Shown piece by piece: positions 2,612 to 46,190 of a stretch of 64,000 bases of DNA. Location: assembly GCA_965655095.1 (NCBI GenBank), contig OZ296652.1:55552001-55616000 (forward strand), read 5' to 3'. Each line of letters opens with the position of its first letter. The stretch's first letter is position 1. The notes below the pieces were generated by a model, which had not been told where the DNA came from, did not search any database, and saw nothing but the letters and a program-made list of their open reading frames with translations. The DNA is from Haplodiscus bocki (Eukaryota). The position numbers and the translations under genes are program-made.

Positions 2612-4034
2612 GTGGTCCGGGAGCGTCCCCCTACCTCATCCGGCCGCCTGGGGAGGGTCCCAGATCCGGCCCCCTCTTTCTGAATTTTGATAGATGAAAT
2701 TTCGAGGGTATAATTGCGATTTTGGAAACTAACCCGCCGATTTTTTTAATTTTTTGCATACGGCCAGATATGACAGATCTAAGAACTAATCCCTACTGGC
2801 GTTTTTCCGAAATATGAACCGAAGTTGGTTTTTTGGCCATTTTTTGGTGCAAAAATGACGTTTTTTCGAAAAATTGGCAGTTTTTCGCCTCAAAGTCCAA
2901 TTTCGTCCACACAACTAGATTAGCAAGTGCGTGCATGCGAAAAGTACGTCAACTGGCAAGAACAATAAGCACTAGAACGCTGGTCTACGACAAGTTTGCG
3001 TGGACTTATGATATTTTGAATGTGTGCAAAAAACGTGCGAAAAGCGTAATTTGCAAACATAACGTCACATAACTCGATAACAATGATGTTTAGCGGTCCA
3101 CTGTGGGAGCACTTTTTTGTTGCCAATCTATAGCGGAACAAATGTTGTGAACAAAAAGTTCCTTAGAAAATTCTACGAAAAAAGTTATAACCGTTTTTTT
3201 GGGCGAAAAACCGACTTTTTTCGAAAATTTTCGCAAAATAGTCGAAGTGTTTGCATTTTTTCGCAAACCTAGATATGGAGACCACCATAATCGCATTAGG
3301 CAGCCCAAGGGCAGCACTACACCAGGGTTAGACAGTTTTTTCAAAATTAATTTCAAGATTTTGATTTTTTCGGCTGTCAATTTTGTCTCGAGAGAGAAAA
3401 AACAAAAAAGACAATTTCGTCCAAAACCCACCATAACTTCTTTCAGCGGCTGTTTGGCTGCTAAATTCATCTTTAACAAAACGTTTGGCACATAACGTGA
3501 AAGCCGGCCGCAAGTTTTGAGGTTTCTTTGATTGGCCAAAAAAAAGTAAATTCATTTCAATTACTGATTTTTTGACCCTTGGCGAAAATTGTGGGAAGAG
3601 TTCAAATACAAATCGAAGTAAAACTTTCTTGGCCAACAAAATACGTCTTCGCAGGATCACAGAAGCCTCCAACAGAAGCTCTGGAGGTTGGTGAGCCGTT
3701 TCCCATCGACCCCAGGGCGATGGAACGGCGAACATATATTAAAAAAGGAAGCGAAAACAAAAAAATTTTTCACCTCTGTGTGGTTTTGATGGTAACCACT
3801 GATTCGAAAACGCCGTTTAGGCCTTGCAGTCGGCTGCTAAACTACACCGTAGGTGTTGAATTGTTCACCGGGACCGGGCTTGAATGATGTAGAGGGAGTG
3901 CGAAGGCACATTTCGTACAGTTTTCCAGTCGACCGACGAAAGTCGGTTATACACAATTGTGTAAAAGTAAATCAAAAACTGTCTGAAATGCACCGTGCAA
4001 GCGGCCCTAGTGTGAGTTCAGCCTCCAGCGCTAG
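2612..4034 (+). mobile_element. Divergent 1423-bp unit (type B) with diverged but structurally equivalent termini
   Basis: Starts GTGGTCCGGGAGCG and ends GCCCTAGTGTGAG...GCGCTAG, flush with its neighbours. The internal part (from ~2880, GTCCACACAACTAG...GCATGCG) is homologous to ~14960-15830 and ~19400-19910. Confidence 0.75.
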
Positions 4035-21944: not shown

Positions 21945-22048
21945 ATATGATAAGATAGGATAAAGTAAGATAGGATAGGATAGGATAGGATAGGATAGAA
22001 TAGGATAAAATAGGATAGAATAAGATAGGATAAGACGATACGATAAGA
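21945..22048 (+). repeat. Imperfect (GATAG/GATAA)n pentanucleotide microsatellite
   Basis: GATAAGATAGGATAAAGTAAGATAGGATAGGATAGG..., immediately upstream of the Rep-helicase ORF. Confidence 0.9.
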
Positions 22049-22086
22049 TTGTGTAGTATTAAATCAAACTGTTTGTTAATTATTAT

Positions 22087-25000
22087 ATGTCTTTATTGAA
22101 GTTTTCATTGTTAACAGCTGCGATGGTCCGTAGATCGAAAAAGAAGTCGCGATCCCGAAGTCGGAATACTAGAGGTGAATTCTCCAGGACTACAACTGAC
22201 ATTGACAATTTTCTGGTTGATGCAAACTACGAATCACAAACTGATGTTTTCACTGTTGAGGCGTCTGTCGAATTTGAAGCACTGGACTCATTTGACGACC
22301 GAATCATCGATTCTCGTAATTCATCTCAGGAAGAACCGGTCAACATTGACCAAGAACATGAAGCTGCTTTCTTTGACTGTTTTGATATCAGTTCCCAATT
22401 CGATTTAGCTAGCTCGTCTGGAACTGAACTTCCGGGTGGTGAACTGTCTGAGCAAGAGAAATTACCTGACTGTGTCGATGAAGTTTTTGAAAAGTTTGGT
22501 GATACCATGAATGTTCTGAAACGTGTAGATACTAAAGCTCTGTCTGAGAGAAAACGTTTTCTCGTCGATCCTAATGTCCTTGTTAACACATGTGACAAAT
22601 GCTATCGAGAGTCAACTGATACGTATCCGCTTGATATTCAACCGACTAATACTCTTAATGTAAACAACAATTTGTATTTCGGAGCTCCTCTTGTTAATAA
22701 TTCGTCGTCTAAAATCTGTTCACTCTGCACGCGATATCTGTCTTGTCGGCAGTGGAAATACGCTTGGGCTGCTGTTCTCTGCACTCTTCTGTTTTTCGGT
22801 TCCCATCTTGGTTGTAACGGAGAATACTTCTTTTCTCTTTTACCGTGCACATTTTCAAGTTCATGGCAGTCAGCTGCTGTAAATGCCGGTTTCAATGACA
22901 TGTCTCTACCTCTTTTCAACGACTTCACGGTTATAGAGCATGATTTCACTGTGTTAATTGAACAGAAAAAAGCAAAAGCTCTGAAGTATGGGTTGAACTT
23001 TTTCACGTTCCCCTTTGTTAAATGCCCCTATGGATGCTCCGCGCAAGTCTCAGCTGTTGGTCAGACTACATTTAAGCACATGCTGAACTTCTTATTTCCG
23101 CTCTTCACTGCTTTCAAGGCAAACCGAAGAAGACTAAGAGGCATGAGACAAGATTTTTTGACAGGGATTCTTCATTTAAAATTGTTCATGTCTTCCCCAT
23201 GTCTAGCCGTCGACGATAACGGCCTCAATTTAGTGACGTGCTCCTTGCATAATAATGCAATCAACAAAAGTTTCATTCACATTGCTTCGTCTCCTTTCGG
23301 AAATCTCATTCATCCGCATGCTGACAGGCTAGGACTTATAGGAACGAAACTACGTTCAGTAACTCCCAGCAAAGTCGGTGTTTTTTCCAACAGCTACACA
23401 ATGGCAACAAGCGTTGGTGGAGCCGAAGGTATTAGTGCAGTTCAACTCAGCAGCTCGAGACTGCTCAATATAAAAAGTCCACAACTCCTTCCTCAGACAG
23501 AAAGTTTGTTTGTGAACTATAGAGTTGATTTGCATAATTTTTTGAGGAATTTGCAAAATAACCATGAAATTGATGAGAACTTTGTTCTGTCTTTGTTCGA
23601 TTGTTCTGATCTACCTTCAGTCAGCAACGTTGAAACGCATATAAAATCGTCTACTTACATAACACTTTTTTCAATGCTGTCACTTCATACGTTTCTGAAA
23701 AATACAACATCACTAAAAACTTGCATACCGCCGTCACTGATTATCAGCCACAACCCAGATTCCTTTGGAGCCAAACCATTCTTTCCGCCGGCCTCATTTC
23801 TGCGAAAAAATATTAGCTTCTTTGTCTTATGCCAGTGGTTCACGAATTTCGAGTTTTTCGGACACATGCTGCTGAATATATGTAACACTCATCAGTTTCT
23901 GTTTTCTTACCTGTCAACACTGTTCAAAGGATATCCCGTGCCATTGACACGTGGAGTGGATCTTACATGTAAAACGTTCAGTTTAGCACCACATTCGTTC
24001 TACCAAGATACCAACTTCAATTTGTTGGCTCAAGTTGTAGAGAGCCTGCCCTTTTGTGAATTGGTTTACTGTCCCACACGTAGCCACATTCTTCAAATTG
24101 ATACACAATCAGGTATCACATCGTCAAATGTTAAAGTTCATGCCATAGTCATTGTTTGCAATGAAGGTTGGTCCCGCCCATTCGATGTTCCAGAATACAT
24201 TTTACTGTTTGGAAAAAATTACCGTCTTGTAAATGTAGGTGGACAGGATCTGAATGAAATCTTCTTACGATACGGTGGTTCTTTTGAGCATTGGTGGCAA
24301 TTCACTGTGAGTAATCATGTTTGCACGAAAACTTCACCTGGGTTTGTTTTTCCGCCAAATTTGAAACGTAACTGGCGTTTTCTCTTGTACTTGGACAACT
24401 ACCGCCAATTGCTTGACCAAACGTCATGCCTCCAATTCTTTTCCACGCAAGATTTTGTGCATTGCACAGAGCACTCCGTGCCTTTGTCGACTGATTTGAA
24501 TGACACGCTCTACAAGTGTTCTGTAAGTGGCTGCTCAAGGAAGTCGCGATGGCGGTGTCCAAAAGTTGATTGTAGTGCTTGCTGTTGTTTGAAGCATTTT
24601 AGAGCCTTCAGTGGAAGAAATCAAGTTGTTTTCGTGTCACCTTCAGATTTCGTAGATTACCAACGTGATTCTGCAGAAAGTTCAAGCTCGCTTAGAAGCG
24701 ATGGTAACTTTGTAGAAAAGGCTGATTATGAAGAATTTTCCTTCGAGGGTTTGAATGAAACAGGATTGTTTAATGAGCCACTACTGCAAAGTGAAGCCAC
24801 CTATAATACACCTTTGACTGAAAATGCTTCTTCTGAGAATGTTGTACCCCTCCATATTCTGTTCAACAAAGCCTTACCGATCTTTAGACGTTCCGGCGGT
24901 AAACCTGATACTTTATCTAAAAAATTTTTGAGGTTCTTTCAGAACTTTGTTGCATCAAATCCAGGAGAGATTGTTTCATTCCTTCAAGTAGAGTCTCTTC

Positions 25001-28000
25001 TCTGTCCTAGTCTTTTTTATTACCAGCTGAGTGAAGGAAATTTCGGTGGAGCACTTCCCTACTTTTTGTACAACAACACGCGCTTCAACAGTCAGTTGAT
25101 GTTTGCTAGCTTGTATGAACATATTTTTGCTCGCATAACAAATATGGAATTACCAGTAGCAGGCAACATTAAATACTTGTTCATGTTAACCGACGCGTTA
25201 TTGAACGTTAATTTACATCAGACAGTAACAAGTAGTTTTTTTAAAAGAGGTGTACAGAATATAGAAATAGCTGGTCAAAAAATGAATTCGTTCAGCGACT
25301 CAATCAAATACACTTTAACAGACTCTGAAAAAAATGTCAAAGAGTTGGCTGCAGCTATGAGGGACAACAAGCCTACGCTTTTTTTGACTTTGACCCTAAA
25401 TCAGAAAGAGCACTTTGGCGTGTCGCCGTTGATAAAGGCCATTGAGTCCTTGTTTCCCGACAAGACGTCTGAAAAATATAGAGCTTGCATGCAGACCTAC
25501 ATGCCTGTAATCCTACGCATGTGGAGTTTAACAGTAGACCATTTGATTAAGTATCTGTTAGAGTCTGGTGAAAATCTTCTTGGTGAAATTGTGAACATTT
25601 GGGGGCGCACTGAATTTCAATCACTAATAGGAAACCTTCCACATTATCACTTACTTTTGTGGCTGGAAAACATTGCGCTTGAGGAACTTCAGGACCTAGT
25701 AGCTTCAACTAAAAAACATCTGAGGTTTAAATTCGATGAGTTATTCCGTTCTGAATTACAAATAGTAAAAAACACCCAAGACATGGAGCGTATTTTTGAA
25801 AGTTTCGAGAAAATACATACTCACACATGTGAGAAAGGAAACAACCGTTGTATGAAAAAGGTAGACGCCCAGGGAAATAAAGTTTGTCGTTTTCCTCCAT
25901 ACCAACCCTCCAACATTACATGGCTGAAAGAGATTCCGCAAAGCTTCTCTGATGAGGCGATGAAAATTTTGCTAGAAGTTGGACTAGCTGAGGGCGATAT
26001 GGATGATTTTGAGCTGGTACAAGAGATGAAATGTCACAAATTTTCTTATCCTGCAACAAATAAAGATCATATAATGCCTAATTCGCCGAGACTTTTTGCT
26101 CTAACTTTGTCAAGTGGAAACGTTTTACTGATTACCGAAAAAATGGCCTCCAAGTACCTTAACAAATATGCAGCTGGTAAGGAGGAACATGCAGAGGTTC
26201 TGGTCAGTGCAGGAACCAGTGAGAAAAGAATGAAATTTAATGTTGGCCTGATTGAAAATAAAAAAATCACTGGAGTGAGTATCAACAGTGAAAAACAAAA
26301 AAGTTCCGTCAGACAAACAAAAGGCATCAGCGCTCTTCACGTTTCACAAACTGAATTTCTATGGTGGACCCTCAAACTGCCATCGGTGATAACAACTTTT
26401 GATTTTGTACACGTGCCATCAGTAAGTCTTGAAAACAGAGGAGCTATTTTGAAAAAAGGTGAAAAAATTGACACAGTAGAAACAACTAGTATTGCTCCTT
26501 TTCTCATTGTTCGTGAATCTCTGAATTTACCTGCTGAATGCTGTTTTACTTCTAACCAAAAGACTGTCATTGAGGACATTGAAAAATCAATATTAACTGT
26601 TGACAAAGTCACCAAGTTTTCTGTGAGGCCACCTCAATTACTTTTTGTTCGACAGCTCAAACAGTACTACTCTTTTTTCCTTGTGGCTAAAACTCTTAGG
26701 TCGAAAACGGAGCTGGTGGCTTCTTTGACCAAAACGCCAATCCCGTGGGTTGATGGCTTAAACGCAATGATTAAATTGCGGCCAAGTTCCGTTGACGAAA
26801 TGCGGAATTTTGTCAATGAAGCAATCGGAAAGGGAATTGCGACTGCTGATGTTTTCCTTTTTGAGCAAGTTTTGGACAACTTGCACGTTGACGCTTACCG
26901 AAAAACTTTTCTGTATATCAAGAATGACATTTCCAGAAGTCCTGCTGTCGTCGTTTTTTCTGATGTGAAGCCCACTCTTTGTTTCAAGTTTCTCTTGCAC
27001 TTGCTCTACACAATGGGAGAGTTCTCGACAGAAATTGATCTTTTCAATGAAGTAGATTTGAGAGGTTGCTTTGTGAAAGCCAAAATTTTGCCGGCAGGTC
27101 AATTGTCAAACGTAGACGCTCTGAGTCTTTTAAAACGTTACATTAGAGAGCAACTGTTTTTTCTTCCTGGAGGAAACGTCTCTTTCTCAAACAAAATTGT
27201 TGCTGCCCACGATGCGATAAAATCGTTGGTACTGGATAATTGTGTGGAACCATTGAAGTTTCCTGCTGTTCTTATGCAGACTTTGACTGAAACACTCGAA
27301 AGTAACATTCAGTCAACCTTTCAACAAGCGCAAGAAAAACTTTTCGATTCCATTAGGCCAAAGAACGTCAGCAATTTGCCCTTAAACAAAACATATCCCT
27401 TCCACAAGGTGTGGTTTCCCGATTTCAACAAGATGCGAATACAAACGGACCGGTCTTTCCACGAACAAGCAGCTATTCTCGACAATGTTTTGACAGCAAT
27501 GACAAAGTTTTTGAAGAAAAGGTGCTATAATTTCACAAAAAATCACGTAATTATGGGTAAACCAGGGGCTGGTAAAAGTCACGTGTCGGGCGTTTGTATA
27601 TTATTTGGTCTGATGAATGGTCTCAATTGTTATGTAACGAGCCTTGCCGCGCGGCGAGCAGCCATGTTCAATTGCGAACATATTCACCGGCTCTTCTGCA
27701 TTGGTATTAACAAGAACTATGATGTTGCATCCGAATCTGAAAAAGCCTTAAAAAAATTGTCAAACAAACCTGAGAAGAGAGCCTTGCTAATGTCACTGGA
27801 CGTTCTGCTGATTGAGGAGATTGGTCTAGTCAGCGCCGAGCTTCTGACTGTAATGGATTTAGTACTTCAGCGACTGAGAGACAACAACACTTTTTTTGGT
27901 GGGCTTTTTGTTTTGGCAAATGGAGACACAAACCAGCTGCCAACAATTGAAGGCACTGATGTTTTTTTGAGTCCAACATTAATTTTTCAGTTTAGATGTC

Positions 28001-28803
28001 ATTTTCTTCAACATTTCGTTAGAATGTGGGATACTGAGGGTAAAGAACTTTTGGAGAAAATGTCGTTAAAACCCATTTCACATCAAGATATCACCTGGAT
28101 AAAAAATGTCATTAGCAAACGCTGCACATTTGTTGATTCCTGGAAGGATGTCACCGACTGCACTTGCATGAAAGTGTTTGGAAAAAAAGAAGCTGAGCGC
28201 GAAGCAGTCAATTTGTTCCGCCAGTCCCTAGTCTCAAAAGGAACAACCTTTGTGGAGCTTTCAGCTGAAGATGAAATGTGTCCTCGACTCTCTAATACTT
28301 GGCTACCAGCTGATCAACGTTCATCTGAGTTTTTAGATAATCACTGCAGAGAACCTCGAAAAGTAATACTGACTGCAAATTGCTTGTTAAGATTGACTGT
28401 GAACACTGAGAATTTGTGCCAAGGCCAAATACTGATCTTAGCGGAAATGCCATCACCAGGTGATAAATGCATCGTTGTCTTCGTTGCTCCAAGTCTGGAA
28501 GCCGTTTCTGACCCAAGTCTGTTCACATCGTCTAAGTTTAAGTGCTGGCGTAAAACACGAATCAACACAACGATTGGTTTCGCTTTTGCAAAAGGTGATG
28601 TTTCTGTTCGACGTACCCAACTACCTGTGTCGAACTACGTTGCTCTCACATGTCACAAATTAATGGGAGACACGTTCGTTAAAATTGCTACGCAAGTCTC
28701 TTTGGTAGATCGGAAGTACAGTCTCTGGATGGCGTCGCAGCTCTATGTGATTATCAGTCGCGTCAACGATTTGAAAAACGTCACTTTCGTGGGATGCAAG
28801 TAA
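22087..28803 (+). CDS. Helitron-like Rep-helicase transposase (HUH Y2 endonuclease + PIF1-family SF1B helicase); start may be the ATG at 22123
   Basis: 2238-aa ORF. Rep motif 1 TLFLTLT (~25375), motif 2 GRTEFQ..GNLPHYHLLLW (HYH at 25642-25650) and motif 3 YLNKY (26155-26169). Helicase Walker A GKPGAGKS (27556), Walker B LLIEEIG (~27810), FGGLFVLANGDTNQLP, ALTCHKLMGDT and YVIISRV. Basic N-terminus (MVRRSKKKSRSRSR) and several Cys/His clusters. Confidence 0.95.
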   Translation: MSLLKFSLLTAAMVRRSKKKSRSRSRNTRGEFSRTTTDIDNFLVDANYESQTDVFTVEASVEFEALDSFDDRIIDSRNSSQEEPVNIDQEHEAAFFDCFDISSQFDLASSSGTELPGGELSEQEKLPDCVDEVFEKFGDTMNVLKRVDTKALSERKRFLVDPNVLVNTCDKCYRESTDTYPLDIQPTNTLNVNNNLYFGAPLVNNSSSKICSLCTRYLSCRQWKYAWAAVLCTLLFFGSHLGCNGEYFFSLLPCTFSSSWQSAAVNAGFNDMSLPLFNDFTVIEHDFTVLIEQKKAKALKYGLNFFTFPFVKCPYGCSAQVSAVGQTTFKHMLNFLFPLFTAFKANRRRLRGMRQDFLTGILHLKLFMSSPCLAVDDNGLNLVTCSLHNNAINKSFIHIASSPFGNLIHPHADRLGLIGTKLRSVTPSKVGVFSNSYTMATSVGGAEGISAVQLSSSRLLNIKSPQLLPQTESLFVNYRVDLHNFLRNLQNNHEIDENFVLSLFDCSDLPSVSNVETHIKSSTYITLFSMLSLHTFLKNTTSLKTCIPPSLIISHNPDSFGAKPFFPPASFLRKNISFFVLCQWFTNFEFFGHMLLNICNTHQFLFSYLSTLFKGYPVPLTRGVDLTCKTFSLAPHSFYQDTNFNLLAQVVESLPFCELVYCPTRSHILQIDTQSGITSSNVKVHAIVIVCNEGWSRPFDVPEYILLFGKNYRLVNVGGQDLNEIFLRYGGSFEHWWQFTVSNHVCTKTSPGFVFPPNLKRNWRFLLYLDNYRQLLDQTSCLQFFSTQDFVHCTEHSVPLSTDLNDTLYKCSVSGCSRKSRWRCPKVDCSACCCLKHFRAFSGRNQVVFVSPSDFVDYQRDSAESSSSLRSDGNFVEKADYEEFSFEGLNETGLFNEPLLQSEATYNTPLTENASSENVVPLHILFNKALPIFRRSGGKPDTLSKKFLRFFQNFVASNPGEIVSFLQVESLLCPSLFYYQLSEGNFGGALPYFLYNNTRFNSQLMFASLYEHIFARITNMELPVAGNIKYLFMLTDALLNVNLHQTVTSSFFKRGVQNIEIAGQKMNSFSDSIKYTLTDSEKNVKELAAAMRDNKPTLFLTLTLNQKEHFGVSPLIKAIESLFPDKTSEKYRACMQTYMPVILRMWSLTVDHLIKYLLESGENLLGEIVNIWGRTEFQSLIGNLPHYHLLLWLENIALEELQDLVASTKKHLRFKFDELFRSELQIVKNTQDMERIFESFEKIHTHTCEKGNNRCMKKVDAQGNKVCRFPPYQPSNITWLKEIPQSFSDEAMKILLEVGLAEGDMDDFELVQEMKCHKFSYPATNKDHIMPNSPRLFALTLSSGNVLLITEKMASKYLNKYAAGKEEHAEVLVSAGTSEKRMKFNVGLIENKKITGVSINSEKQKSSVRQTKGISALHVSQTEFLWWTLKLPSVITTFDFVHVPSVSLENRGAILKKGEKIDTVETTSIAPFLIVRESLNLPAECCFTSNQKTVIEDIEKSILTVDKVTKFSVRPPQLLFVRQLKQYYSFFLVAKTLRSKTELVASLTKTPIPWVDGLNAMIKLRPSSVDEMRNFVNEAIGKGIATADVFLFEQVLDNLHVDAYRKTFLYIKNDISRSPAVVVFSDVKPTLCFKFLLHLLYTMGEFSTEIDLFNEVDLRGCFVKAKILPAGQLSNVDALSLLKRYIREQLFFLPGGNVSFSNKIVAAHDAIKSLVLDNCVEPLKFPAVLMQTLTETLESNIQSTFQQAQEKLFDSIRPKNVSNLPLNKTYPFHKVWFPDFNKMRIQTDRSFHEQAAILDNVLTAMTKFLKKRCYNFTKNHVIMGKPGAGKSHVSGVCILFGLMNGLNCYVTSLAARRAAMFNCEHIHRLFCIGINKNYDVASESEKALKKLSNKPEKRALLMSLDVLLIEEIGLVSAELLTVMDLVLQRLRDNNTFFGGLFVLANGDTNQLPTIEGTDVFLSPTLIFQFRCHFLQHFVRMWDTEGKELLEKMSLKPISHQDITWIKNVISKRCTFVDSWKDVTDCTCMKVFGKKEAEREAVNLFRQSLVSKGTTFVELSAEDEMCPRLSNTWLPADQRSSEFLDNHCREPRKVILTANCLLRLTVNTENLCQGQILILAEMPSPGDKCIVVFVAPSLEAVSDPSLFTSSKFKCWRKTRINTTIGFAFAKGDVSVRRTQLPVSNYVALTCHKLMGDTFVKIATQVSLVDRKYSLWMASQLYVIISRVNDLKNVTFVGCK

Positions 28804-28869
28804 GCCAAAGTTTCTTAGGGTATAAGATGTTTTCCAAATTATGTCTCCTAACAGTTCTAATAATTTAAG
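28800..28869 (+). other. Predicted 70-nt spliceosomal intron fusing the helicase to the downstream ORF
   Basis: The GTAAGC donor overlaps the ORF stop, with CTAAC branch-like motif at 28848-28852 and TTTAAG acceptor. The splice gives ...GGA TGC AA|G CAG GAA in frame. An alternative acceptor at 28854 is also in frame. Confidence 0.7.
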
Positions 28870-29389
28870 GCAGGAAACCCTTGCTGCTGTAGAGCAAATA
28901 CTCCAAAAAACAACCCCGAAGGAACTCCAAGTTCAGGAACGATTTCAATTTTTGAAGAGGATGAGGTCTAACAATGGTGTAACCATCGACATAAACGACG
29001 TTTCATACATTCCCTATCGGGTTGATGTTCCTTTAGTGCCTCTTGGCTTCGTCTATCTTCTGGTTAGCGTTAAGCACGGACGTTTCAACATATGCTTTGT
29101 GGACGAAACTGAGGGGAACCTTCTGGCTGATTTAAGTAGACATAGTTCAGGACAATTTGACTGTTTAACACAACGGAAAGACTTGAGGCCTTGGGCTGTT
29201 GCTGCCTTCTGCTACGGTTTTGAAGTTGAACATCAGCGTGAGGACTTGAAGCAACAAATTGAAAGCGTTCTACATTTAGGTTTCCGCGTCGATACAATAG
29301 TTGATGAATTCGAGAAAAATTGCAAAAGCGGAAATTTTGGCGTTCTAACCTTTGTTAAATGTGGTTCCTTGATGACATATTACAACTGA
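28870..29389 (+). CDS. SLX1-like GIY-YIG nuclease domain, probably the C-terminal exon of the transposase; degenerate active site
   Basis: GFVYLLVS...CFVDETE..LLADLSRHSSG...T...LRPWAVAAFCYGF follows the SLX1-type pattern YxLxS...YIGxT..xxRLxxHNG...RPWxxxxxxxGF. Confidence 0.7.
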
Positions 29390-29901
29390 GCAGTGGAAAC
29401 TGATTTAAAAATATTTCTTCATTTAAAATGTTGTAGAGATTTAAACTGAAAATGACTTCTGTTTCTGTAATGTTGAAAATTTGAGTTTTGATGTTTAAAT
29501 TATGTGACTGAAAATGAAAGAAATTTGCTGCATGTATATACAAAACCGGAATTGTGGCATTTATTTTTCGTGCACTGAAGAAGGGACGTATTCCGCAAAA
29601 TGTGTTTTCAAGTGACATCATGTCATGTCAAGAGGTTGAATGAATGTTCGGTTATTTGTTCGTGCATTCTCGAATGCAAAACTTTGTTTTGCAGCTCTTC
29701 TTAATGTATTTGAAATTTCCATCCAAATCTTCATCGTAAACAGCTTCCGGTGCAATTGAAAGTTTATTTCTTGGCTACAACGAAAACATCAATGTTGACC
29801 TTTTTTTGAATATTTAGTTGTTTTCTGCGGTTGAAAAATGATGATGACAACAGTTGAACTTGGTCCTGCTTCAACTGGAACTCAATTTCTTAGACGAAAT
29901 A

Positions 29902-30984
29902 ATGCCTGCTGGTTACATTAAAACTGGAAAAAGTGTTGATGCTGTTCTACATGAAGTGGAGACGAAATTCGAGGAGAGGCAAAATAATGAAGTTATTGAC
30001 GATGAAATTTTTATTCCCAACCGCTTTAAATTGAAGTGTGTATTCTTATATTCTACAGCCGGGCAAAAAAAAATTAGTTTCTTCAAATCAAATAAAAACA
30101 ACTCCAAAATCCGAAGTCAGGAGGTTTCTAGTTACGACCGCTTCGTAGTTCTTGGGGTCGATGGCACCCAACATGTGTTACTGGCTTTGACCAACAGCTC
30201 TGAGGAATCCAGCAGACTACTGAATTTCAAAACCTTGAAGCCGGGCCAACCTGTCTGGATTCTGAGCCCGAAAGTGATAGGTTACCTGAAAGGAACACAA
30301 AATCCCCTAATTAGAACAGGAGATCCGTTGGTACCTTGTCCGCGGTCCAACCAATTTAGTTTGTCGCCCAGTGACGTTAATATCAGCAATTATGTGTTTT
30401 TCGATTTCTTGGCAACAAACTTGAGAGTCACACAGGCAGTGCCGCTTGATAATGTCTGTCGAGGGAAGCTTTGCGACTCGCAATGTAAGCCAACCAACTG
30501 TCCATGTCTTGTAGCAGAAACAAAAAAACATTGGGCACTTTCAGTGACTTTCAGCTGTGACGAGTTCAGCGAAGGTTTAGAGGAAGAGGAAGTTACCATC
30601 ACTTCCATGCAGCTGACGAAAGCTCTCATACACAGTTCTAAGAAATCGCATCAGCTAGTAAATGAAGAAATAGACACTTATGAGATGGAGGATGCTGTTT
30701 GTCGCCTCTGCACTTCCATCAACGCTGAACAAAAGTTCAGGGTTATCGGTTGGTTCAAGCCAGCGCAAACGGAGGAGGGGACAGTAGCCTCGGGTCACTT
30801 TGCATACCATATCTGCTCGTTAATTCCGCACGCGGATTTGAATGATAATCAGCAAGCACTTATGTACGGAGCGCCCGTGACATTTTTCAACGCGGCTACT
30901 GTGGATGTTGGATGTGTCAACCGTACCCCTTCTGGAGGGGTGATTGTGCCCGCTGGTCCGTCGTCATCTACAGATGGGTGTTAG
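29902..30984 (+). CDS. Hypothetical ~360-aa element-borne protein with a Cys cluster (CRGKLCDSQCKPTNCPC)
   Basis: Long uninterrupted ORF inside the element with protein-like composition. The ATG at 29902 is preceded by TTTCTTAG. Family not recognised with certainty. Confidence 0.8.
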   Translation: MPAGYIKTGKSVDAVLHEVETKFEERQNNEVIDDEIFIPNRFKLKCVFLYSTAGQKKISFFKSNKNNSKIRSQEVSSYDRFVVLGVDGTQHVLLALTNSSEESSRLLNFKTLKPGQPVWILSPKVIGYLKGTQNPLIRTGDPLVPCPRSNQFSLSPSDVNISNYVFFDFLATNLRVTQAVPLDNVCRGKLCDSQCKPTNCPCLVAETKKHWALSVTFSCDEFSEGLEEEEVTITSMQLTKALIHSSKKSHQLVNEEIDTYEMEDAVCRLCTSINAEQKFRVIGWFKPAQTEEGTVASGHFAYHICSLIPHADLNDNQQALMYGAPVTFFNAATVDVGCVNRTPSGGVIVPAGPSSSTDGC

Positions 30985-31252
30985 ACATCTGCAATGCCTC
31001 AGAGCCGTGGTTGCCGCCGTTATTGGAATTTATGAAAACACAAAACAACAACCAATCACTGAAACATGTCGCTCTGAATGATTCAACTTTTCTAATCAGA
31101 CACTTTAATTTTCCTGTTGCCTATTCCATTCTCTTTAAGCGTTAAATAGGAAAGTTCTGCAAGACGCAATTCCTTACGTGTCAAAACTTTTCGTACCACA
31201 TTTGGTAGTCGTAAAAGTATTCACAGCTCTATGTGAAGTGCTTGGTAATCAG

Positions 31253-31289
31253 CAATATCCTGGCTGTATAAGATACAGCCAGGATATTG
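31253..31289. other. Perfect 17-bp inverted repeat with a 3-nt loop
   Basis: CAATATCCTGGCTGTAT-AAG-ATACAGCCAGGATATTG. Confidence 0.95.
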
Positions 31290-32511
31290 ACTGCATCACT
31301 GTTGTCATCAGCTTTTTGTGTCGACACAGTTAAACTTTAGACGTGTCCATTAGCCACTTGGCGCCGGCAGATGTTTTATATAGATGAAATTTTTTTGAGC
31401 GCCTCACTATTTTTTGCCTTGTTTTGGAACTACTACACGCAATGTTTTTTGACGAGGAAAAAGTTTTCCCATCTGGCATGACGGGGAAGTGGATGATGTC
31501 TTGGAGTTTTTTTGTTGAGGGCCTTTCAACTCCAGATTGTGGCCAGATATTTGTAGCCGTAGAGAAATGGAAATTTCACTGAGCAACGATTATCTTTAAA
31601 TTCGCGTAAGTTTCACAGTTGCACCCTGAGTTGATGAACTGTTGATACAATCCGATATTTTTGCAGAATAACCTAACTCTCAACTTGTTGCAGAAAATAC
31701 TATTTGAAGGTTGTTCGAAAATTGTGTGGTAATTCTGTTGTGAAACACTTATCCAAAATTTTTTGTCTTCAAAAATGTATATCTATGTAAAACTCGATGA
31801 TCGAATGTATGTCAAAGCAACAGTTTCAACGAAATATTGAGACAGGGACAGAAGGATGAAATACACCTCACATAACATTGCAAGCTGTTTAGCTCAATCC
31901 AAAAACAACGCTGTGGTGTTTTAAGGAAATCCTCATACATGCAAGCATGAGGCAAGTCTGTACACGTAAATTGAATTCTGAATTTACAATTATCAACAGT
32001 TTGAGTTGGCCATGGAGAAATCATAAGTGCAATTTTTTGAGAAAATTAATTTCTGATACAGCTGATATGGACCAGTGGCTAAAGTGACAAGACATTGTGT
32101 TCGACATCTTGTTCTTAACTTTGGTTACCCTTCTCATATGAGCGCCAGCTTTTTTTTAGTTGCACCCTGCGTGACTTCAATGTTGAAAAATGATTCAAGT
32201 AAAGCATTGAAACTTTTGAAAAAATCCCGTAGGATGTTTTCTGTCGCATTTGAGAGCAAAAAATTGAAATTAGGGTTAGTCTTTAGGCTGTGTTAACGTT
32301 AATAGAAAGAATAATCAATAACCAAGCGATAACGTGACTAGCTGTGTTCGAAAAATCAGCGAATAGTAGTCTTGAAAACACATAAACAATTTTTCACATT
32401 TGAATGGAATTTTCTAATTCCATTAGAATTAAAAGAACGTAGGTTCATGAATTGTTGATATATTCTACTCAAACGCAAAGGCTCGAGCCATTTCGAAAAC
32501 TTTAAACATGT

Positions 32512-32790
32512 GAGGCTTGTCTGTTAGAGGCAGCATGCCTAACAGATGAAACGCTGCTTTTGGCTTGTCTGTTGGAAACAGCTTGCCTAAGACATGCAAG
32601 GTTGCGGTTGGCTTGTCTGTTGGAAATAGCATGCCTAAGTTTTGAGAGTTTGCATTTGACTTGTCTGCCCAAAGCAGCTAGTCTAAAATATGCATTTTTA
32701 ATGTTGGCTTGTCTGTTCGAAGCAGCATGCCTTAGTTTTGAGAGTTTGCATTTGACTTGTCTGCCCAAAGCAGCTGGTCTAAAACATGTT
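32512..32790. repeat. 48-bp minisatellite, ~6 copies
   Basis: RCTTGTCTG anchors at 32515, 32563, 32611, 32659, 32707 and 32755. Open on both strands as 16-aa repeats. Confidence 0.9.
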
Positions 32791-35700
32791 GGACATGAGC
32801 AGCTGGCCACAAACGGTGTCAAATTTTGGGCACACCTATCGTTACCTTCAGTCAATCCACTTCACCGGCAGACAAATGGTTCCTAAGGGCGAAATGCTGC
32901 AGGACGACGGGCGCCATATAGCGTGTTGAAAATTTACAAAACTGAAGACAATATCCCATGTGGTTTGTACATGAAATATGTTTTGAAATCTATGAAATAA
33001 AAGAGCATCTGTGAAACAGTCCCTACTTGTTCAACAATTGCAGGTCTGAAAAAAATATGCTCTGTAAAAGCAGATTAGATTAAGTGTTGTGTGATTTCTT
33101 CATTGAATTAATTAGACTCGATTGAATTAATGGTGTATCAGTAATTATGCGAGAACAATCTAATCCAGTGTGTTTATAGACCTGTTCTCCCAATCTCCTA
33201 ATGGAAAGTAAGGTATTCAAAAGATTTACTGCGTGGTCTCCTCCCACATCCGGAATCGATGCAAGTTTCGACATATTCACAAGGTTAGTTGTCTTTCATC
33301 GAAATGTGCAAACGTTAGTCAGTGCAAGCTGCTTCATGTTTGTGATCAAAAGAAACTCTCAGCTGATATTTCTTCTCGTAAATTTTACAGGTGATTAGAA
33401 ACCTCGATTGATACGACACAGTCCTTAATCCGAATAAAGATTATTGACAGAAGGTTGTCAGTTGAAGTTCAACGAAAACTTTAGTCGCACAAGTTCATTT
33501 GCTGTGTCTGGAAGAACATGAAATTTTTATTAAACATCTATTTGTTCTTTTATGATCGATCGACTGGTTGGCAAAGACCAATTGGAGAAGTGATATGGAG
33601 TTTATGCCTATCAAGGATTGGTTAGTTTTGCGTACGATATACAAAACTTAAGATTCCATCAATGAAACAAAAAAATGATTTCGAAACCCAAAGGTTTACT
33701 TTTTTAAAACCATTTCGTTGACTGAACTCATCAAGTCTACTCCATTATGTAACATTGATGGCAGTGATTTCAAAAAACTTTTGGGTACAGGAAAAACAAA
33801 TTTTTGTCAAGACGTGCGCCCTAACCTTATGCCACACTCGAAAGTCCGTTGGCGCGCTGTCGCGCGCCGATCGTCTCAACTAAAGCCCTACTTGCCGGCT
33901 ATGCCGTCACGCCCCTCTAGGTGGGCGGGGGCCATATTCCCCTCAATATTTGGGCAAGCGGGTAGGGTCCTGATTGCCCTTCTCAGTACCAGGTTTACGG
34001 ATACAAAGCCCGGAGCTCAAAAATGCTAACTTTTAAACTAACCGTAAGATTTTGATAAGCGAGCGGCCCCCACCGTTTTTTTGGACGCTGATTACGATGG
34101 TAGCGGTCAAATTTTGATTGAAAATTCTGGGACCCCCCCCTTTTGCCCCTTTTTGGGGTAAAAACGCCCATTTTTGCATATTTTTGGATTTTTCTCGCCA
34201 ACGGTTGGTTTTAGCGGGTCGGGTGTGGAGTGCAAAAATGATCAGCGTCGGCCAGGGGTTACGGGGGGTATTTTTGTTTTGGGCCACATTTCCCCCCCTA
34301 AAAGTTCACTCCCCAGCCCACGCCCCTTTTAGGGGTAAATGTCCAAAAAGTCGGTGAAGGAGTGCTCGTAGCGTGTCCATGCATAAGGGATGATTTGTAG
34401 TACTGCTGGAGTGCTTTCCAGTGATATAGTTGTTTTGTGCATCGGTTTCCCCCCCTCGGAGACTATGCCCGAAATGTAGATTTTTGGGCAGTTAGACTGT
34501 TTTTTGAGGGGAAGTGAAGGGGTTTGGAGGCATGGATCGTATAGGCAATAATATGCGGCGCGTGCAGGCGAATCAGGGGAACCCACTTACGCCCTCTGTT
34601 TATGCCCGCTACGCAACATTTTTACCCGCTACGCAACATTTTTGCCCGCTACGCAACATTTTTGCCCGTTTTTCCGATTTTTTGTCCACAGTCACTATTT
34701 TACCGCAGATTTGCGCGCTTTTTGCGCCAAATCTGCGGTTGGACCACTCCAGTGGGCCTTCCTTGCTGCTACGACAATTCCTGCCACCAACCAGAAATCC
34801 CCCCTCCGGGTGGGGCACTCGCCCGGTTTCATCGTTCCCACTGTGTTGAGCCACACACGAAAGTCCGTTGGCGCGCTCTCGCGCGCCGATCGTCTCAACT
34901 AAAGCCCTACTTGCCGGCAGGCGCCCCCATTCCCTCTAGGTGGGCGGGGGCCATATTCCCCTCAATATTTGGGCAGGCGGGTAGGGTCCTGGCTGCCCTC
35001 TATGTACCTAAGTTTACTGTCTCCGAGCTTGGGGTAAAAAATGCTAACTTTTAAACTAACCATAAGAATTTGATGAGAGAGCGGCCCCCACTGTTTTTTG
35101 GACGCTGATTACGATGGTAGTGGTTAAAATTTGATTGAAAACTCTGGGACCCCCCCTTTCACCCCTTTTTGGGGTAAAAACGCCCATTTTTGCATATTTT
35201 TGGATTTTTCTCGCCAACGGTTGGGTTTAGAGGGTCGAGTGTGGAGTGCAAAAACGATCAGCGTCGGCCAGGGGTTACGGGGGGTATTTTTGTTTTTGGC
35301 CACAATTCCCCCCCTAAAAGTTGACTTCCCAGCCCACGCCCCTTTTAGGGGTAAATGTCCAAAAAGTCGGTGAAGGAGTGCTCGTAGCGTGTCCATGCAT
35401 AAGGGATGATTTGTAGTACTACTGGAGTGCTTTCCAGTGATATAATTGTTTTGTGCATCGGTTTCCCCCCCTGGGAGACTATGCCCGAAATGTAGTTTTT
35501 TGGGCAGTTAGACTGTTTTTTGAGGGGAAGTGAAGGGGTTTGGAGGCATGGATCGTATAGGCAATAATTTGCGGCGCGTGCAGGCGAATCAGGGGAACCC
35601 ACTTATGCCCTCTGTTGATGCCCGCTACGCAACATTTTTGCCCGCTACGCAACATTTTTGCCCGCTACGCAACATTTTTGCCCGTTTTTCCGATTTTTGG

Positions 35701-36952
35701 TCCAAAGTCACTATTTTACCGCAGATTTGCGCGCTTTTTGCGCCAAATCTGCGGTTGGACCACTCCAGTGGGCCTTCCTTGCTGCTACGACAATTCCTGC
35801 CACCACCAATCAATCCCCCCTCGGGGGGGGCTCTCCCCCGGTTTCATCGTTCCCACTGTGTTGAGCCACACACGAAAGTCCGTTGGCGCGCTCTCGCGCG
35901 CCGATCGTCTCAACTAAAGCCCTACTTGCCGGCAGGCGCCCCCATTCCCTCTAGGTGGGCGGGGGCCATATTCCCCTCAATATTTGGGCAGGCGGGTAGG
36001 GTCCTGGCTGCCCTCTATGTACCTAAGTTTACTGTCTCCGAGCTTGGGGTAAAAAAATGCTAACTTTTAAACTAACCATAAGAATTTGATGAGAGAGCGG
36101 CCCCCACTGTTTTTTGGACGCTGATTACGATGGTAGCGGTCAAATTCTGATTGAAAACTCTGGGACCCCCACTTTTGCCCCTTTTTGGGGTAAAAACGCC
36201 CCTTTTTTGCATATTTTGCAATTTTTCTCGCCAACGGTTGGTTTTAGCGGGTCGGGTGTGGAGTGCAAAAATGATCAGCGTCGGCCAGGGGTTATGGGGG
36301 GTATTTTTGTTTTGGGCCACATTTTCCCCCCCAAAATTTCACTCCCCAGCCCACGCCCCCTATAGGGGTAAATGTCCAAAAAATCGGTGAAGGAGTGCTC
36401 GTAGCGTGTCCATGCATACGGGATGAATTGTAGTACTACTGGAGTGCTTTCCAGTGATATAGTTGTTTTGTGCATCGGTTTCCCCCCCTCGGAGACTATG
36501 CCCGAAATGTGGTTTTTTGGGCACTTAGACTGTTTTTTGAGGGGGAAGGAGTGTGTTTAGAGGCATGGATCGTATAGGCAATAATATGCGGCGCGTGCAA
36601 GCGAATCAGGGGAACCCATTTATGTGCTCTGTTTATGCAGGCTACGCAACATTTTTGCCCGCTACGCAAAAGTTTTGCCCGTTATTCCGATTTTTGGTCC
36701 AGAGTCATTATTTTACCGCAGATTTGCGCGCTTTTTGCGCCAAATCTGCGGTTGGACCACTCCAGTGGGCCTTCCCTGCTGCTACGACAGCAGTTCCTGT
36801 CACCAATCAATCCCCCCTCGGGGGGGGGCACTCCCCCGGTTTCATCGTTCCCACTGTGTTGAGCCACACACGAAAGTCCGTTGGCGCGCTATCGCGCGCC
36901 GATCGTCTTAACTAAAGCCCTACTTGCCAGCAGGCGCCCCCATTCCCTCTAG

Positions 36953-36983
36953 GTCCACAACGGCGTTACCAATGGACTTAGAG
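36953..36983 (+). CDS. Putative 31-nt exon of the sialyltransferase (VHNGVTNGLR-G)
   Basis: Bounded by the array's final ...CCCTCTAG and by AG|GTAATT. Its phase-1 end joins 37296 in frame. VHNGVTNG occupies the position of the MNxAPTxG segment of sialylmotif L. Confidence 0.55.
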
Positions 36984-37295
36984 GTAATTTTCGAAGATAA
37001 TTCGAATTTCCCAAAAAGTCCGACCCAGATTGTAGGAAAGCTTCAGGAAACCTGAACTCTAGGACCAAATTTGTTCTATTACTAAAAAATACTAAAAATC
37101 TCAAGGAGAAAACGTTATTTTGCAGAAAATTCGAATTAAAGTGGTGAAGTAAAATAATTTTGGTCTTTGGATTCAAGTAATGACATGGAAATTGATCACT
37201 GCTCATTCCTTGGTCGATCATTGAACTATAATTGATTTATCATTCCATAATCGTTGATTGACTTCCAATAAATCCTTCATTGAATACCCCTAAAG

Positions 37296-37843
37296 GTCAT
37301 GAACTTTTTGTGGGGTCAAGAACCACAGTCCGACTTGTCTCTCATTCGATGAATTTCACTACTCTGACAAAAATATTGCAGCAAGAATCACCAAATATTC
37401 CGCAGTCTGTTTTATTTTTCTATCCACCGAGACGGCAAAAATCGATTATGAATGTGGCCAATAAACTATCAGCCACTCTGAAAAACACGTCAATCCAAAT
37501 TTATTTGGGCAAAAAGGAAAATGTTGCATATTTCCAGAGGTATTTCACCGCTCAAACTGGGCGAAACTTGGGTCCAGAACATATTTGGATGACAACTGGT
37601 TTTGTTGGAAACGTTATTGCTTTGAAAACATGTGATTCGATCTACATTTACGGTGCTGTGAGTAAGCAAGATTGTGACTCAGGAGTTATATCGAAACAAG
37701 TACCTTATCACTATTACGGAAGCCTGAACAAAAAATTGTGCAAGTACATGAGTACCAAACCTTATGGGCACTCATTTTTCGATGAACATCAAATTTACGA
37801 TGATTGGTCGAAACAAAGGAAAATTGAGTTGCTGCATACCTAA
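37296..37843 (+). CDS. GT29 sialyltransferase (ST6GalNAc-like), 3' exon
   Basis: End of motif L (GHELFVGSRTTVRLVSH), motif S (MTTGFVGNVIALKTCDSIYIYG), motif III (PYHYY) and motif VS (HSFFDEH). The only AG acceptor in the open frame before motif L is at 37294-37295. Confidence 0.85.
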
Positions 37844-40800
37844 GAGAATTAAACATCTCCCAGTTGACAAACTTCTACACATTCACCTCGTGTTTCGTCA
37901 ACAAATTCTGTGGAACCCAAATCTAATTTCATAACTCTTGAACATTCCGAATCTGCAGATTGTCATGTACAAGTTCTATATATTTTTGCTTTTCTTCAGA
38001 ACTCCCCGGTGCTCGAGTTATCTTTTCAGTGTTCAATCTTCAATCAGTCAGCTTTCTGAAGGTTACAAAAACCAGAATACATGTATTTACAACTCAAATG
38101 GCAGTCCATGTATGGAGTTAGAGTTTTTTTGAGTCAATCTTTTTGGTGTGTGATAGGTCCAGTAAACACCATTGAACTACGTTGCCATCTCAAGTTAAAT
38201 ACTCCAAAAGGTTTTGTATAAAGTAATTCCATCCTGTTCTCAATCTTCGTGAATTTTATACTTTAAGACGTTTGAATCCAAACACGTCCTGCAAGATAAC
38301 AGCTCCTACGACGTCAGACAGCGTTCTTCCTTTTAGTTTGTTTCCCAAATGAATATTAATTTTGCTTAATACGAAATTTAACCAAAAATTCAAAACAGTA
38401 GTTGGTTTTTCTCTTCACTGTCCTGCCAATTGCTTATTCTAGCCAGCAAAGATGAGGTAGCAGCATGACATCGCTTGACAGATGTCAGTCAAAAGGTCAT
38501 TGACGTCAGTTGTGATGGAACTGTTTGTTAATACTAAGTTTACTGAGACATTTACTATATTCGAAATTTTGGGTTGGGATGAAAAAAAATTCGTCAGCGT
38601 CTGAAAAAGTCCGCTTTGGCTAAAAAAACTCGAAAAACTAAATAATTTTCCTTGAAACTTTTGCTCAAAACTGTTCTTTTAAAAATGTAGAAGTGATTTT
38701 TGATCAGTTGAAGCATCTTGCCATTGATTCTGATTGATTTCTTTGGCGGAGTTCATTTTTAGGTGAAGTTTTCAAAGAAAATTCAAAAAACTTGGTTTTC
38801 TTGCAAAAAATTCTCAAATTTTCCCCCATTGACAACTATACTATTCGTCACATCGGTTTTCCACGAAAAATAGCGATCAACGAACTAGGACAAGGGAACT
38901 CAACTTTAGACTTTGAGAACTATCCAAGACAATCAAAATGTATTAATTTATTTTTTCATTTGGAGAAACCTAAAAATTTCCGACACCTATCACTATTTGT
39001 CAAAATTTGAAAACAGTATACTCCGCCAGTTGAAGATTTTTTGACACCCACAAATGATTGAACCATAAAAAGAAGGTTTTCTTAAAATTCAGTTGCATTT
39101 CTGTAGAGGTGTGCTTGAATTCTTTTGCCTAGTTTTTCCAAAAGTAATTTTGAAAAAAAGGGCTTTTCGTCAAAGTCGTCAATTTTTCGCCTTTACAGCG
39201 GTAAACAGTCCTCCGTCTTGTACAAGGATACAAGGATATCAATTATCGTGTGAACTGGACGAAAGGACCGGAATGTAATTGTTGAGAGGTATCACATATA
39301 TTCTACGAATAAGTTTTTTCCCTGGAACAGAATAAAACGAATGAGATGCAACCACTGGTTTCTAATCTAAAAATCGTTCTATCCCAGTCAAAATCTTTGG
39401 CTTTTTTTCTTATAAAAGGGATCCAGTGATATCTCTGCAATTTTTGAATATAAATTGATCTTTTTTTCTTTGCCGAAATACTCACTGGAAATAATGCAGT
39501 GCCACTGCCCCTCCCCTCTTGTTTATATTTTCTCCTCGAAAATTGCCGTGGAATGTTCTTGTGTACCGGAAACCATCAGAAAGCTTTTTTGACAATAGGA
39601 AACTGTCATTTCGTCTGAAATACTTGAAGTGACCAATCTGAAATTTGTTAAAATGCGAGGTAGTCAGATTAGCAAAATCAAATCATAATGGCGGGAAACC
39701 AAGACTCCGAGCCGCCTTCCTCTGGCTGAGATAGAAAAAAAATATTTAGAATTATCTAAAAGACAGCAGAAAAAAACTCATTTTTTGCATTGTTTAGTTA
39801 CAATTATGGGCTACATATCACTCAAAAAAACCTGAAAAAATACTTTTTTTTGCCTCTGACTGAATTCTTACTTCAAAAGGTTTCTGCCCCCATTCATTAT
39901 ACGTCACATCAGTAGATTCTTGGGAGCTGTACACTCAGCTTAAATATTGTGGAATGTCATCAATCTTTTATGAATTCTTTCCTTTCCCTCTGGAACCTAG
40001 CATGGAATGTTGCACCTCAAAAGTACAGATAATCCGAAGAATTTAGTATTTTTTGTGATTCAGGGCCGGATCGTTTGTTCTACGCTTTTGTGTCAGCAGC
40101 TCCTCTGAAATGTTTCTATCAGAGAAAAATGCATTTGAGATCACCCTTTTATCGAAGAGAAGCTTTTTCATGAGGAATGGAAGCTGGAGAATCATTGATC
40201 GCATCCATGCTAATTGGTACCCAGAAAGAGAAACTGCGTTTTCCAGCTGTTCTTAGGTCTCCTGATGAAAACAAAACCATCCAGGCTGTCTCATGACACG
40301 GTTCCTGGTGGCTGTTGAGTAAATTGGGACACTTTCGAAGGAAAATCTTGTATACTTATTTGAATATTTTCGGTATGTCAGGGTAATCAGCAGTAGTTTT
40401 TCGTAAGTTATACATTCAAGCTGATCGCGACGTTTGTTCTATCTAGTTTCAACTCAGTTTGGTTTGTTTATTTTATATTTTACATACATATAATGTTTAT
40501 TTAATTTTACAACATTAAATTGTTAATAGAAAAACTGTCGTTTCTGAAAAAATCTGATCAAGTCTTCATTTTTCGGAAACTTGTTAATGTTCATTTTGAA
40601 AACCTTTTACAACTGAGGTTTGATAAAATTGTTCCCAGCCAAGGTGATCAGAAAAATATAAAGTGATCAAAAGGGGCATTACAAAGTGTTTGAATTCAAT
40701 GCGTGTTGCAAGACCGATTCACAACGACTCAAACGGCCATTTCCCACTACTTAGAAACAGAAGTGATTTTTTTACTTACAAGATCAAACCCCTCAAGCTC

Positions 40801-44950: not shown

Positions 44951-46018
44951 TAATGTCCTGAACTTTAATTCATCCCGTTCAAATGAAGGTCTATTTTCGA
45001 ATCATCTTTTTTTCTGAAGTGAGATAACCTGTAAATTGCCTGTTAGAAAAAAGAAACCTTATTGATGACGTTTGCTTTTCGGCAGTTTCCCAATTTGTTG
45101 CTCGAATGAGTTTTGAAAGCTCTCCTAAGCGATTTTCTTCCTTTTTTTGCGTTTGCATCCTAACCGAGTATGAAAGTTCGCCTTCAAATTAGTTCAATTT
45201 TTAATCGTAGCTCTGAAAACAAGCAATTGCTGAATCACTTGAGAGCCTCGAGGTACCAAATACACGTACACTGCAAATAGAACACGAAAACACCTAGTGG
45301 CAAAAAGTGTATTTTCAGGTACGAAGGGTTCTTCTGCGCGAGAAAAAAATCGCAAATTCTGGTTCCCTCCTGCATTTCTCAGGTAATCGAACCAATTTAT
45401 ATTGGAAATTGTCCAGAGTGAGTTGCGTTCATCCGTTTCAACTGTTTCAACTCTCTCTCCGTTTGCAAAGTCTTTGAACACTTTGTTCCATCAAAGAAAA
45501 GGAGGAAGGAAATCACATGAATTTACTTCGGAGACTTGTCAATTAAAATTCCATATTAGTCATCATCCTTCAAAAACATTTTGAGTTCCTAGGTTTGGTA
45601 CCCACTATGTGCACTTTGCTTTTGATGTAGAGCCACAAATGACGACCTTTTTCAGTAGTTATTTAGCACAGGAAGCAAATTGGTGCTTGTCGTGTCATCA
45701 TTTTGTAGTAGATCAAACAGTTGGACTTCAACGACTCCATTTGAATTCAACCATCACCTTCTTCGTACCTGCTTCTGAACACCAATTTTTTCAGAACGAC
45801 AGCACTGAATCATTCACAGACCTCACGCTGAGCAGGAAAACGGGGTTGATGCAAGTGATTTCTCTGACTGATAGGTTTAGTAACTGGAATTAAATTAACG
45901 GCCAATCATCCAGCTCCAACAAGAAATAATTTTTTTAAAAAGGTGGACATCAACTAATTAACAGGATTAAGACCACCACTTGGAAAAAAATGGCCGAATA
46001 TAATCAGAAATACACTTC

Positions 46019-46190
46019 NNNNNNNNNNNNNNNNNNNNNNNNNNNNNNNNNNNNNNNNNNNNNNNNNNNNNNNNNNNNNNNNNNNNNNNNNNNNNNNNNN
46101 NNNNNNNNNNNNNNNNNNNNNNNNNNNNNNNNNNNNNNNNNNNNNNNNNNNNNNNNNNNNNNNNNNNNNNNNNNNNNNNNNNNNNNNNNN
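46019..46190. other. Assembly gap (172 N)
   Basis: Run of N. Confidence 1.

Follow-up and report, generated by a model that had tools for sequence, protein, structure and literature searches.

A candidate transposon-born intron in an ST6GalNAc-like sialyltransferase gene, enlarged by a chain of Helitron-like elements

Introduction

Introners derived from DNA transposons with terminal inverted repeats (TIRs) were reportedly described by Huff et al. 2016 in Nature. Such introners carry inverted repeats and a target duplication within a coding exon and are absent from homologous genes; their splice sites come from the duplication and the element end, and their removal restores the open reading frame (ORF) exactly. 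The derivation of introners from TIR DNA transposons was documented by Gozashti et al. in 2022 (PMC9860276) and 2025 (PMC12130899), and TIR elements account for about 82% of the classified introner families (PMC12130899). Helitron-derived introners are also on record, e.g. family 5 of Suillus subalutaceus (PMC12130899). These are rolling-circle elements without target duplication, which lie in sense orientation in the intron and have GT...AG termini.

Here we describe a sialyltransferase gene of Haplodiscus bocki, the second exon of which lies in a stretch of 64,000 nucleotides of contig OZ296652.1 (hereafter the window). Its putative 717-nt intron resembles TIR introners in all features named above. 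It differs from them in being a single copy, in an imperfect duplication with 4-5 spacer bases on one side, and in having been expanded about 60-fold by other transposons; moreover, its splicing is predicted from the sequence. A likeness to hAT-type MITEs is seen as well: the ends TAGGGG of the window insert and CAGGGG of an insert in the paralogue L001 are like Ac-like ends, and the L001 insert is flanked by an exact duplication of 8 bp, whereas the window duplication, 8-10 bp long, contains one mismatch and is shifted by 4-5 bases on its left side. The chain of elements found inside the intron shares all of the listed features with Helitron-derived introners. In contrast to them, it is nested in a pre-existing intron and enters CTAG^GT (^ marks a joint throughout), not between T and T/C or A and T. 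It is not a Helitron-derived introner, because the ends of the chain are not the ends of the intron.

Results and Discussion

A GT29 gene in two distant exons

The gene encodes a GT29 (ST6GalNAc-like) type-II membrane sialyltransferase of 386 aa and consists of two exons, separated by about 44 kb, on one strand of the same contig. Exon 1 lies left of the window and exon 2 (37296-37840) within it:

L004:10001-10613: exon 1 of the GT29 gene
37296-37843, plus strand: last coding exon of the GT29 gene, residues 205-386 plus stop, by Pfam and homologue alignment

Since L004:17352-20672 corresponds to window positions 1-3314, exon 1 ends 6,738 nt left of the first base of the window. This exon was recovered by an exhaustive profile-free search with P0002 as the ORF P0017 of 223 aa (record positions 45409-46080, corresponding to L004:10001-10672), which matches the N-terminal half only, up to ...RFNDAPVKG, and continues with 18 unrelated residues and a stop. 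Exon 1 carries sialylmotif L as far as this peptide, reaches Gly-205 and ends in phase 1. At 37295/37296, an AG^GT opens a frame of 181 codons which is closed by a stop at 37841-37843. Exon 2 matches the Pfam family PF00777 (Glyco_transf_29) over profile positions 96-269 of 272 (E 9e-10, 38.8 bits) and exon 1 over positions 35-90 (41-45 bits), both above the gathering cutoff of 23 bits; with this complementary coverage, the two halves of the gene abut.

The end of exon 1, ...GTC AAA G^GTCACG, and the start of exon 2, ...CCCCTAAAG^GT CAT GAA, were joined to a protein reading ...ILRFNDAPVKGHELFVGSRTTVRLVSHS..., which has a membrane anchor, a stem and all sialylmotifs and aligns without gaps across the joint to five homologues (P0005, P0006, P0002, P0007 and P0009). 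By alignment, the sialylmotifs L, S, III and VS are all intact and the anchor is N-terminal. Neither of the two halves (205 and 181 codons) contains a stop or a frameshift. Apart from the intron that splits motif L, the gene has no coding intron, and in the tree its branch does not exceed those of the paralogues in length. Among named proteins, vertebrate ST6GalNAc enzymes come closest, with about 33-40% identity; the gene is a divergent ST6GalNAc-like member of GT29. The closest database proteins, P0002 and P0003 (57-60% identity), are encoded in the assembly ERZ26859043 (ENA), which also holds the contig of the window (ctg81233), and are thus paralogues. Word-based searches with both gene halves found no close orthologue, either with or without the intron.

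In the window itself, neither of these paralogues revealed an upstream exon, and tblastn with P0002 detected none on the plus strand. Two weak matches on the minus strand at 26191-26492 (E 0.25) were judged to be due to chance, and in a leftward walk by exact look-up the ORF at 345-881 was not on record. At window position 37311, the contigs from two of the three runs of sample S1 show C instead of T, probably a heterozygous single nucleotide polymorphism that would change Val to Ala in the motif L peptide ...ELFVGS....

The initial annotation had considered the array of repeated units left of exon 2 to be the intron itself, with the CTAG at 36952 as acceptor of a 31-nt coding exon that is spliced on to 37296. 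The segments in question are:

36949-36952, plus strand: terminal CTAG of the chain, not a coding acceptor
36953-36983, plus strand: 31-nt host segment right of the chain insertion point, intronic, without GT29 similarity

The letters that prompted this reading are all present: a unit ends at 36952 with a pyrimidine tract and TAG, 31 nt follow up to AG^GTAATT at 36983, and AG^GT is found at 37295/37296 after 312 nt. The units are of the form GT...AG, and introners derived from Helitrons have been found in a fungus (PMC12130899). As had been predicted, an exon with motif L is located to the left of the window on this contig and strand, but it ends in phase 1 after ...APVKG and not in phase 0 after an Arg codon. 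Exon 1 by itself extends through motif L to Gly-205. Addition of the 31 nt shifts the frame and leads to a stop after 8 codons (codon 213), which refutes a coding role of this segment and of the CTAG at 36952 as its acceptor. The direct join is free of gaps against all homologues, whereas the peptide VHNGVTNGLRG, proposed as motif L, finds no support by homology and with canonical spacing misses R, N, A and P. Furthermore, the borders of the chain are located 374 and 343 nt inside the intron, the junctions of which restore the frame and possess direct and inverted repeats of their own; the termini of the rolling-circle elements are therefore not those of the intron, and neither the role of the array as maker of the intron nor its description as introner-like could be upheld. 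The proposal that the array lies in motif L proved right insofar as the array is wholly intronic and the gene is split in this motif, although eight residues past the conserved Arg. Taken together, we regard an intron formed by the array itself as extremely improbable.

A chain of Helitron-like elements within the intron

The array is part of a one-way chain of about 43.3 kb in total, which is located entirely within the GT29 intron. A blastn map of the units places all copies on the plus strand. The chain starts at L004:10988, i.e. 6,363 nt left of the window, and comprises the following features inside it:

1-36952, plus strand: part of the chain in the window, with non-autonomous units of about 1 kb, other derivatives and one autonomous copy
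20196-33921, plus strand: autonomous element, first ~800 nt and last ~90 nt like the 1-kb units
35955-36952, plus strand: last complete 1-kb unit, starts GTGGGCGG... and finishes ...CTCTAG
36883-36900, plus strand: G+C-rich hairpin with a 7-bp stem in the shared 3′ module, 52 nt upstream of the terminal CTAG, read directly

All 20 unit joints in the window show CTAG^GT(G/...), in the form ...CTAG^GTGGGCGGGGGCC, which bears out the earlier observation that the units begin with GT and end with AG. The tail of the last unit, ...CCCCCATTCCCTCTAG, stops at 36952. In the autonomous element, blastn matches to the unit cover 20196-21000 and 33831-33899. Its ORF of 2,238 aa (22087-28803) matches the Pfam families Helitron_like_N (E 4.6e-7) and PIF1 (E 1.2e-5); the chain thus contains a protein with Rep (HUH) and PIF1-type helicase, as is typical of Helitron-like elements. 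At their 3′ end, CTAG, the chain elements conform to CTRR. Their 5′ end GTGGGCGG and their host site CTAG^GT depart from canonical Helitron insertion with its A/T site and 5′-TC.

Both outer borders of the chain lie in unique host DNA, a rare view of a Helitron-like chain. On the left, a complete unit begins at L004:10988 straight after host ...ACGATTCCTAG, so that L004:10987/10988 reads host CTAG^GTGGGCGG. On the right, a complete unit extends to 36952 and is followed by host GTCCACAACGG, giving CTAG^GTCCAC at 36952/36953. The reconstructed host site without the chain, ...TTCCTAG^GTCCAC..., has only CTAG^GT in common with the unit joints. Accordingly, the first Helitron-like element entered the host DNA at CTAG^GT, the hexamer also seen at the unit joints, and the two borders suggest this hexamer as the minimal founding target of the chain family.

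Read depth was taken from four DNA-like runs of two samples; it was flat and single-copy over the gene and 100- to 1,400-fold over the unit. In DNA contigs, the 3′ hairpin module (36809-36909) reached about 1,400 times the single-copy depth and the remaining unit about 20-200 times, so many more elements share this 3′ end than the rest of the unit. In all four runs, the joint of chain and host was spanned from 36925 on, and no allele with an empty chain site was seen among them.

The units at 5034-6033 and 7033-8032 are 100% identical, as are 6029-6552 and 8028-8551, while neighbouring units differ by 4-8%. This identity points to a recent duplication of a block of about 1.5-2 kb, to gene conversion within the chain or to an assembly effect, and it marks the chain as young and still changing.

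Some variation was noticed at the ends of the units, where 15-25 nt of at least four unrelated versions separate the conserved core ...CTACTTGCC(G/A)GC from the final CTAG. Two of the tail versions alternate along the chain (example tails at 36932-36948, 1743-1759 and 20170-20190). The stretch 2593-4034 inside the chain is unlike the 1-kb unit, yet ends with ...GCTAG right before the start of a unit; it may represent another element family or captured DNA. An Rfam search of 33500-38500 gave no match.

Repeats at the ends of the 717-nt intron

Removal of the chain leaves an intron of 717 nt, 374 nt of which lie on the side of exon 1 and 343 nt on the side of exon 2. Its parts and terminal repeats are as follows:

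L004:10614-10987: left intron part, 374 nt, A+T-rich DNA unrelated to the chain
36953-37295, plus strand: right intron part, 343 nt, single-copy (depth equal to that of flanking unique DNA), contiguous with L004:10614-10987 after removal of the chain
L004:10610-10619: left copy of the direct repeat, AAAGGTCACG, contains the donor AG^GT
37292-37301, plus strand: right copy of the direct repeat, AAAGGTCATG, with the acceptor AG^GT at 37295/37296
37276-37292, plus strand: right terminal inverted repeat, TTCATTGAATACCCCTA, pairs with TAGGGGTTTTCGATCAA at L004:10624-10640

A direct repeat matching at 9 of 10 positions, AAAGGTCA(C/T)G, is located exactly at both ends of the intron and holds both AG^GT splice sites. 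The terminal inverted repeats match at 14 of 17 positions and start with TAGGGG at the very ends of the insert. An inverted-repeat score as high as theirs was reached anywhere in the tested stretch by 56 of 2000 shuffled sequences. The RNA duplex formed by the intron ends has a calculated energy of -22.4 kcal/mol compared to -11.6 ± 2.8 in shuffles, and none of 500 shuffles was as low. Between the left direct and the left inverted repeat there are 4-5 extra bases (TTTC), which means that the target duplication is not a textbook one; the inverted repeats are also short, and 4 of the 27 positions of the flanking repeats have diverged. Its bases at +3 and +5 make AAG^GTCACG a weak donor.

The intron site is uninterrupted in all four homologues compared, L001 and L002 of the same assembly and L005 and L006 of the assembly ERZ25074608, the latter two being single ORFs. 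At this site they read GTC/GTT/GTG AAA/AGA GGT/GGA/AAT TTY/TAT GAR in a single copy. The intron ends coincide with those of the putative element plus its target duplication, and removal restores the ORF, as in introners. This uninterrupted state of the homologues, together with the repeats at the intron ends, points to a small transposon with TIRs and target site duplication (TSD) as the source of the intron. We consider it fairly probable that such a transposon made the putative 717-nt intron, which the chain later bloated. A search of the window and of six loci brought up no further copy of the 717-nt element, and its right half has single-copy depth, so that it is at most a candidate member of a transposon family. 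No transposase relative was identified.

Vertebrate sialyltransferase genes often split motif L, and one may ask whether the intron is ancestral to GT29 and was lost from the paralogues, e.g. through retrocopies, with the direct and inverted repeats being due to chance. The homologues are indeed almost free of introns, as retrocopies would be, and the splice consensus alone accounts for 4 of the 10 repeated bases. Against this, the repeat runs 5-6 bases past AG^GT, the pairing of the ends is far above that of shuffles, the intron is absent from 4 of 4 nearest homologues, no further coding intron is present in the window gene, and a comparable insert, flanked by an exact 8-bp duplication, occurs at another site in L001. 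An ancestral origin therefore appears very improbable. Our literature search on intron positions in motif L of ST6GalNAc genes found nothing usable.

The read-through peptide ...LNTPKG directly upstream of 37296 resembles NxAPVKG and was considered as a trace of a longer ancestral exon or of a decayed pseudogene. This idea was dismissed, as the Smith-Waterman score was below the mean of shuffles; the likeness arises from the duplicated AAAGG together with the end of the inverted repeat. Comparison of 36953-37282 with the paralogues by Smith-Waterman alignment in three frames detected no GT29 homology upstream of 37283.

Related GT29 loci

In the paralogue P0002 (L001:10846-11208), a 347-nt insert is located in the coding sequence at ...VVSK^EVPY..., a site different from that of the window intron. 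It is flanked by an exact 8-bp duplication, GTCCAAGG, and has hAT-like inverted ends, CAGGGGTGTAAAA and TTTTACACCTCCG, starting with CAGGGG. In L001, the 8-bp duplication directly abuts inverted repeats of the YARNG type; the window insert has TAGGGG ends, but 4-5 extra bases separate its left end from the left direct repeat. The L001 insert is a putative second case of such an insertion in the GT29 family. Its exact removal would require a GC-AG intron, and a GT-AG alternative would add two codons. The locus of P0003 (L002:9699-10425) looks like a pseudogene: its frame is shifted between about 9977 and 9995, and the C-terminal part is interrupted by in-frame stops.

Proposed layered history and splicing of the intron

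We propose the following history, which replaces the model of a rolling-circle array acting as introner. Small hAT-like TIR elements would have inserted into coding exons of the GT29 family. In the window gene, an element some 700 nt long and bounded by terminal inverted repeats would have entered the coding sequence ...GTC AAA GGT CAY GAA... and duplicated its target, by chance in a frame-restoring register. Of the two target copies, the left one would provide the donor (AAAG^GTCACG), and the last A of the element together with the right one would provide the acceptor (...CCCCTAAAG^GTCATG). With donor and acceptor drawn from the two copies, splicing would remove the element along with one copy and restore ...RFNDAPVKGHELFVGSRTT... 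exactly. Later, a rolling-circle Helitron-like element would have entered the intron at host ...ATTCCTAG^GTCCAC, a site mimicking the CTAG^GT joint of its family, and the chain would have grown to 43.3 kb in sense orientation by further insertions at joints or by duplication. In this view, a small TIR element would have given an otherwise intron-free animal sialyltransferase gene its intron, with both splice sites supplied by the target duplication, and the Helitron-like chain would then have inflated this intron from 0.7 kb to 44 kb. On balance, the locus is more probably than otherwise a further candidate for a transposon-born intron that arose by the already known mechanism of TIR introners.

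Whether the gene is alive has to be weighed separately. If the small insertion or the 43-kb chain had disrupted the coding exon, splicing would not occur and the two halves would be those of a young pseudogene. The donor is weak, the paralogue at L002 is clearly a pseudogene with frameshift and stops, and the identical units 5034-6033 and 7033-8032 indicate a young and dynamic chain, so that intact ORFs are no proof of function after its arrival. On the other hand, all 205 and 181 codons are intact and the catalytic motifs are kept, while divergence of the repeats around the insert has already reached 4 of 27 positions; GT and AG are found in exactly the register that restores the frame; and the branch of the gene in the tree is not accelerated. 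A dead gene is accordingly an unlikely explanation, albeit one with appreciable weight. We favour a functional, spliced intron at least before the arrival of the chain, as the stop-free exons next to diverged repeats, the kept motifs and the branch length suggest. Today, a 43-kb chain in sense orientation with genes of its own may well abolish correct splicing, and it may have killed the gene recently.

One can speculate that the joints of the chain serve as zero-length recursive splice sites, a possibility we rate as highly doubtful. Each joint has the layout of such a site, a pyrimidine-rich tail and TAG next to GTGGGC. Exon 1 would be joined to each CTAG in turn and thereby regenerate a donor AAAG^GTGGGC, which is closer to the donor consensus than the native GTCACG; after the last joint, CTAG^GTCCAC, it would be spliced to 37296, yielding a correct mRNA without a mini-exon. 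If this were true, Helitron-like elements with GT...AG termini would be self-cleaning in sense orientation and huge chains would be tolerable inside genes. The exact removal put forward in the initial annotation would then also be feasible wherever else a unit inserts into an exon.

Right of the gene, the region 60162-62386 on the plus strand contains ORFs with RVT_1 and integrase zinc domains, a retroelement fragment which is unrelated to the intron described here.
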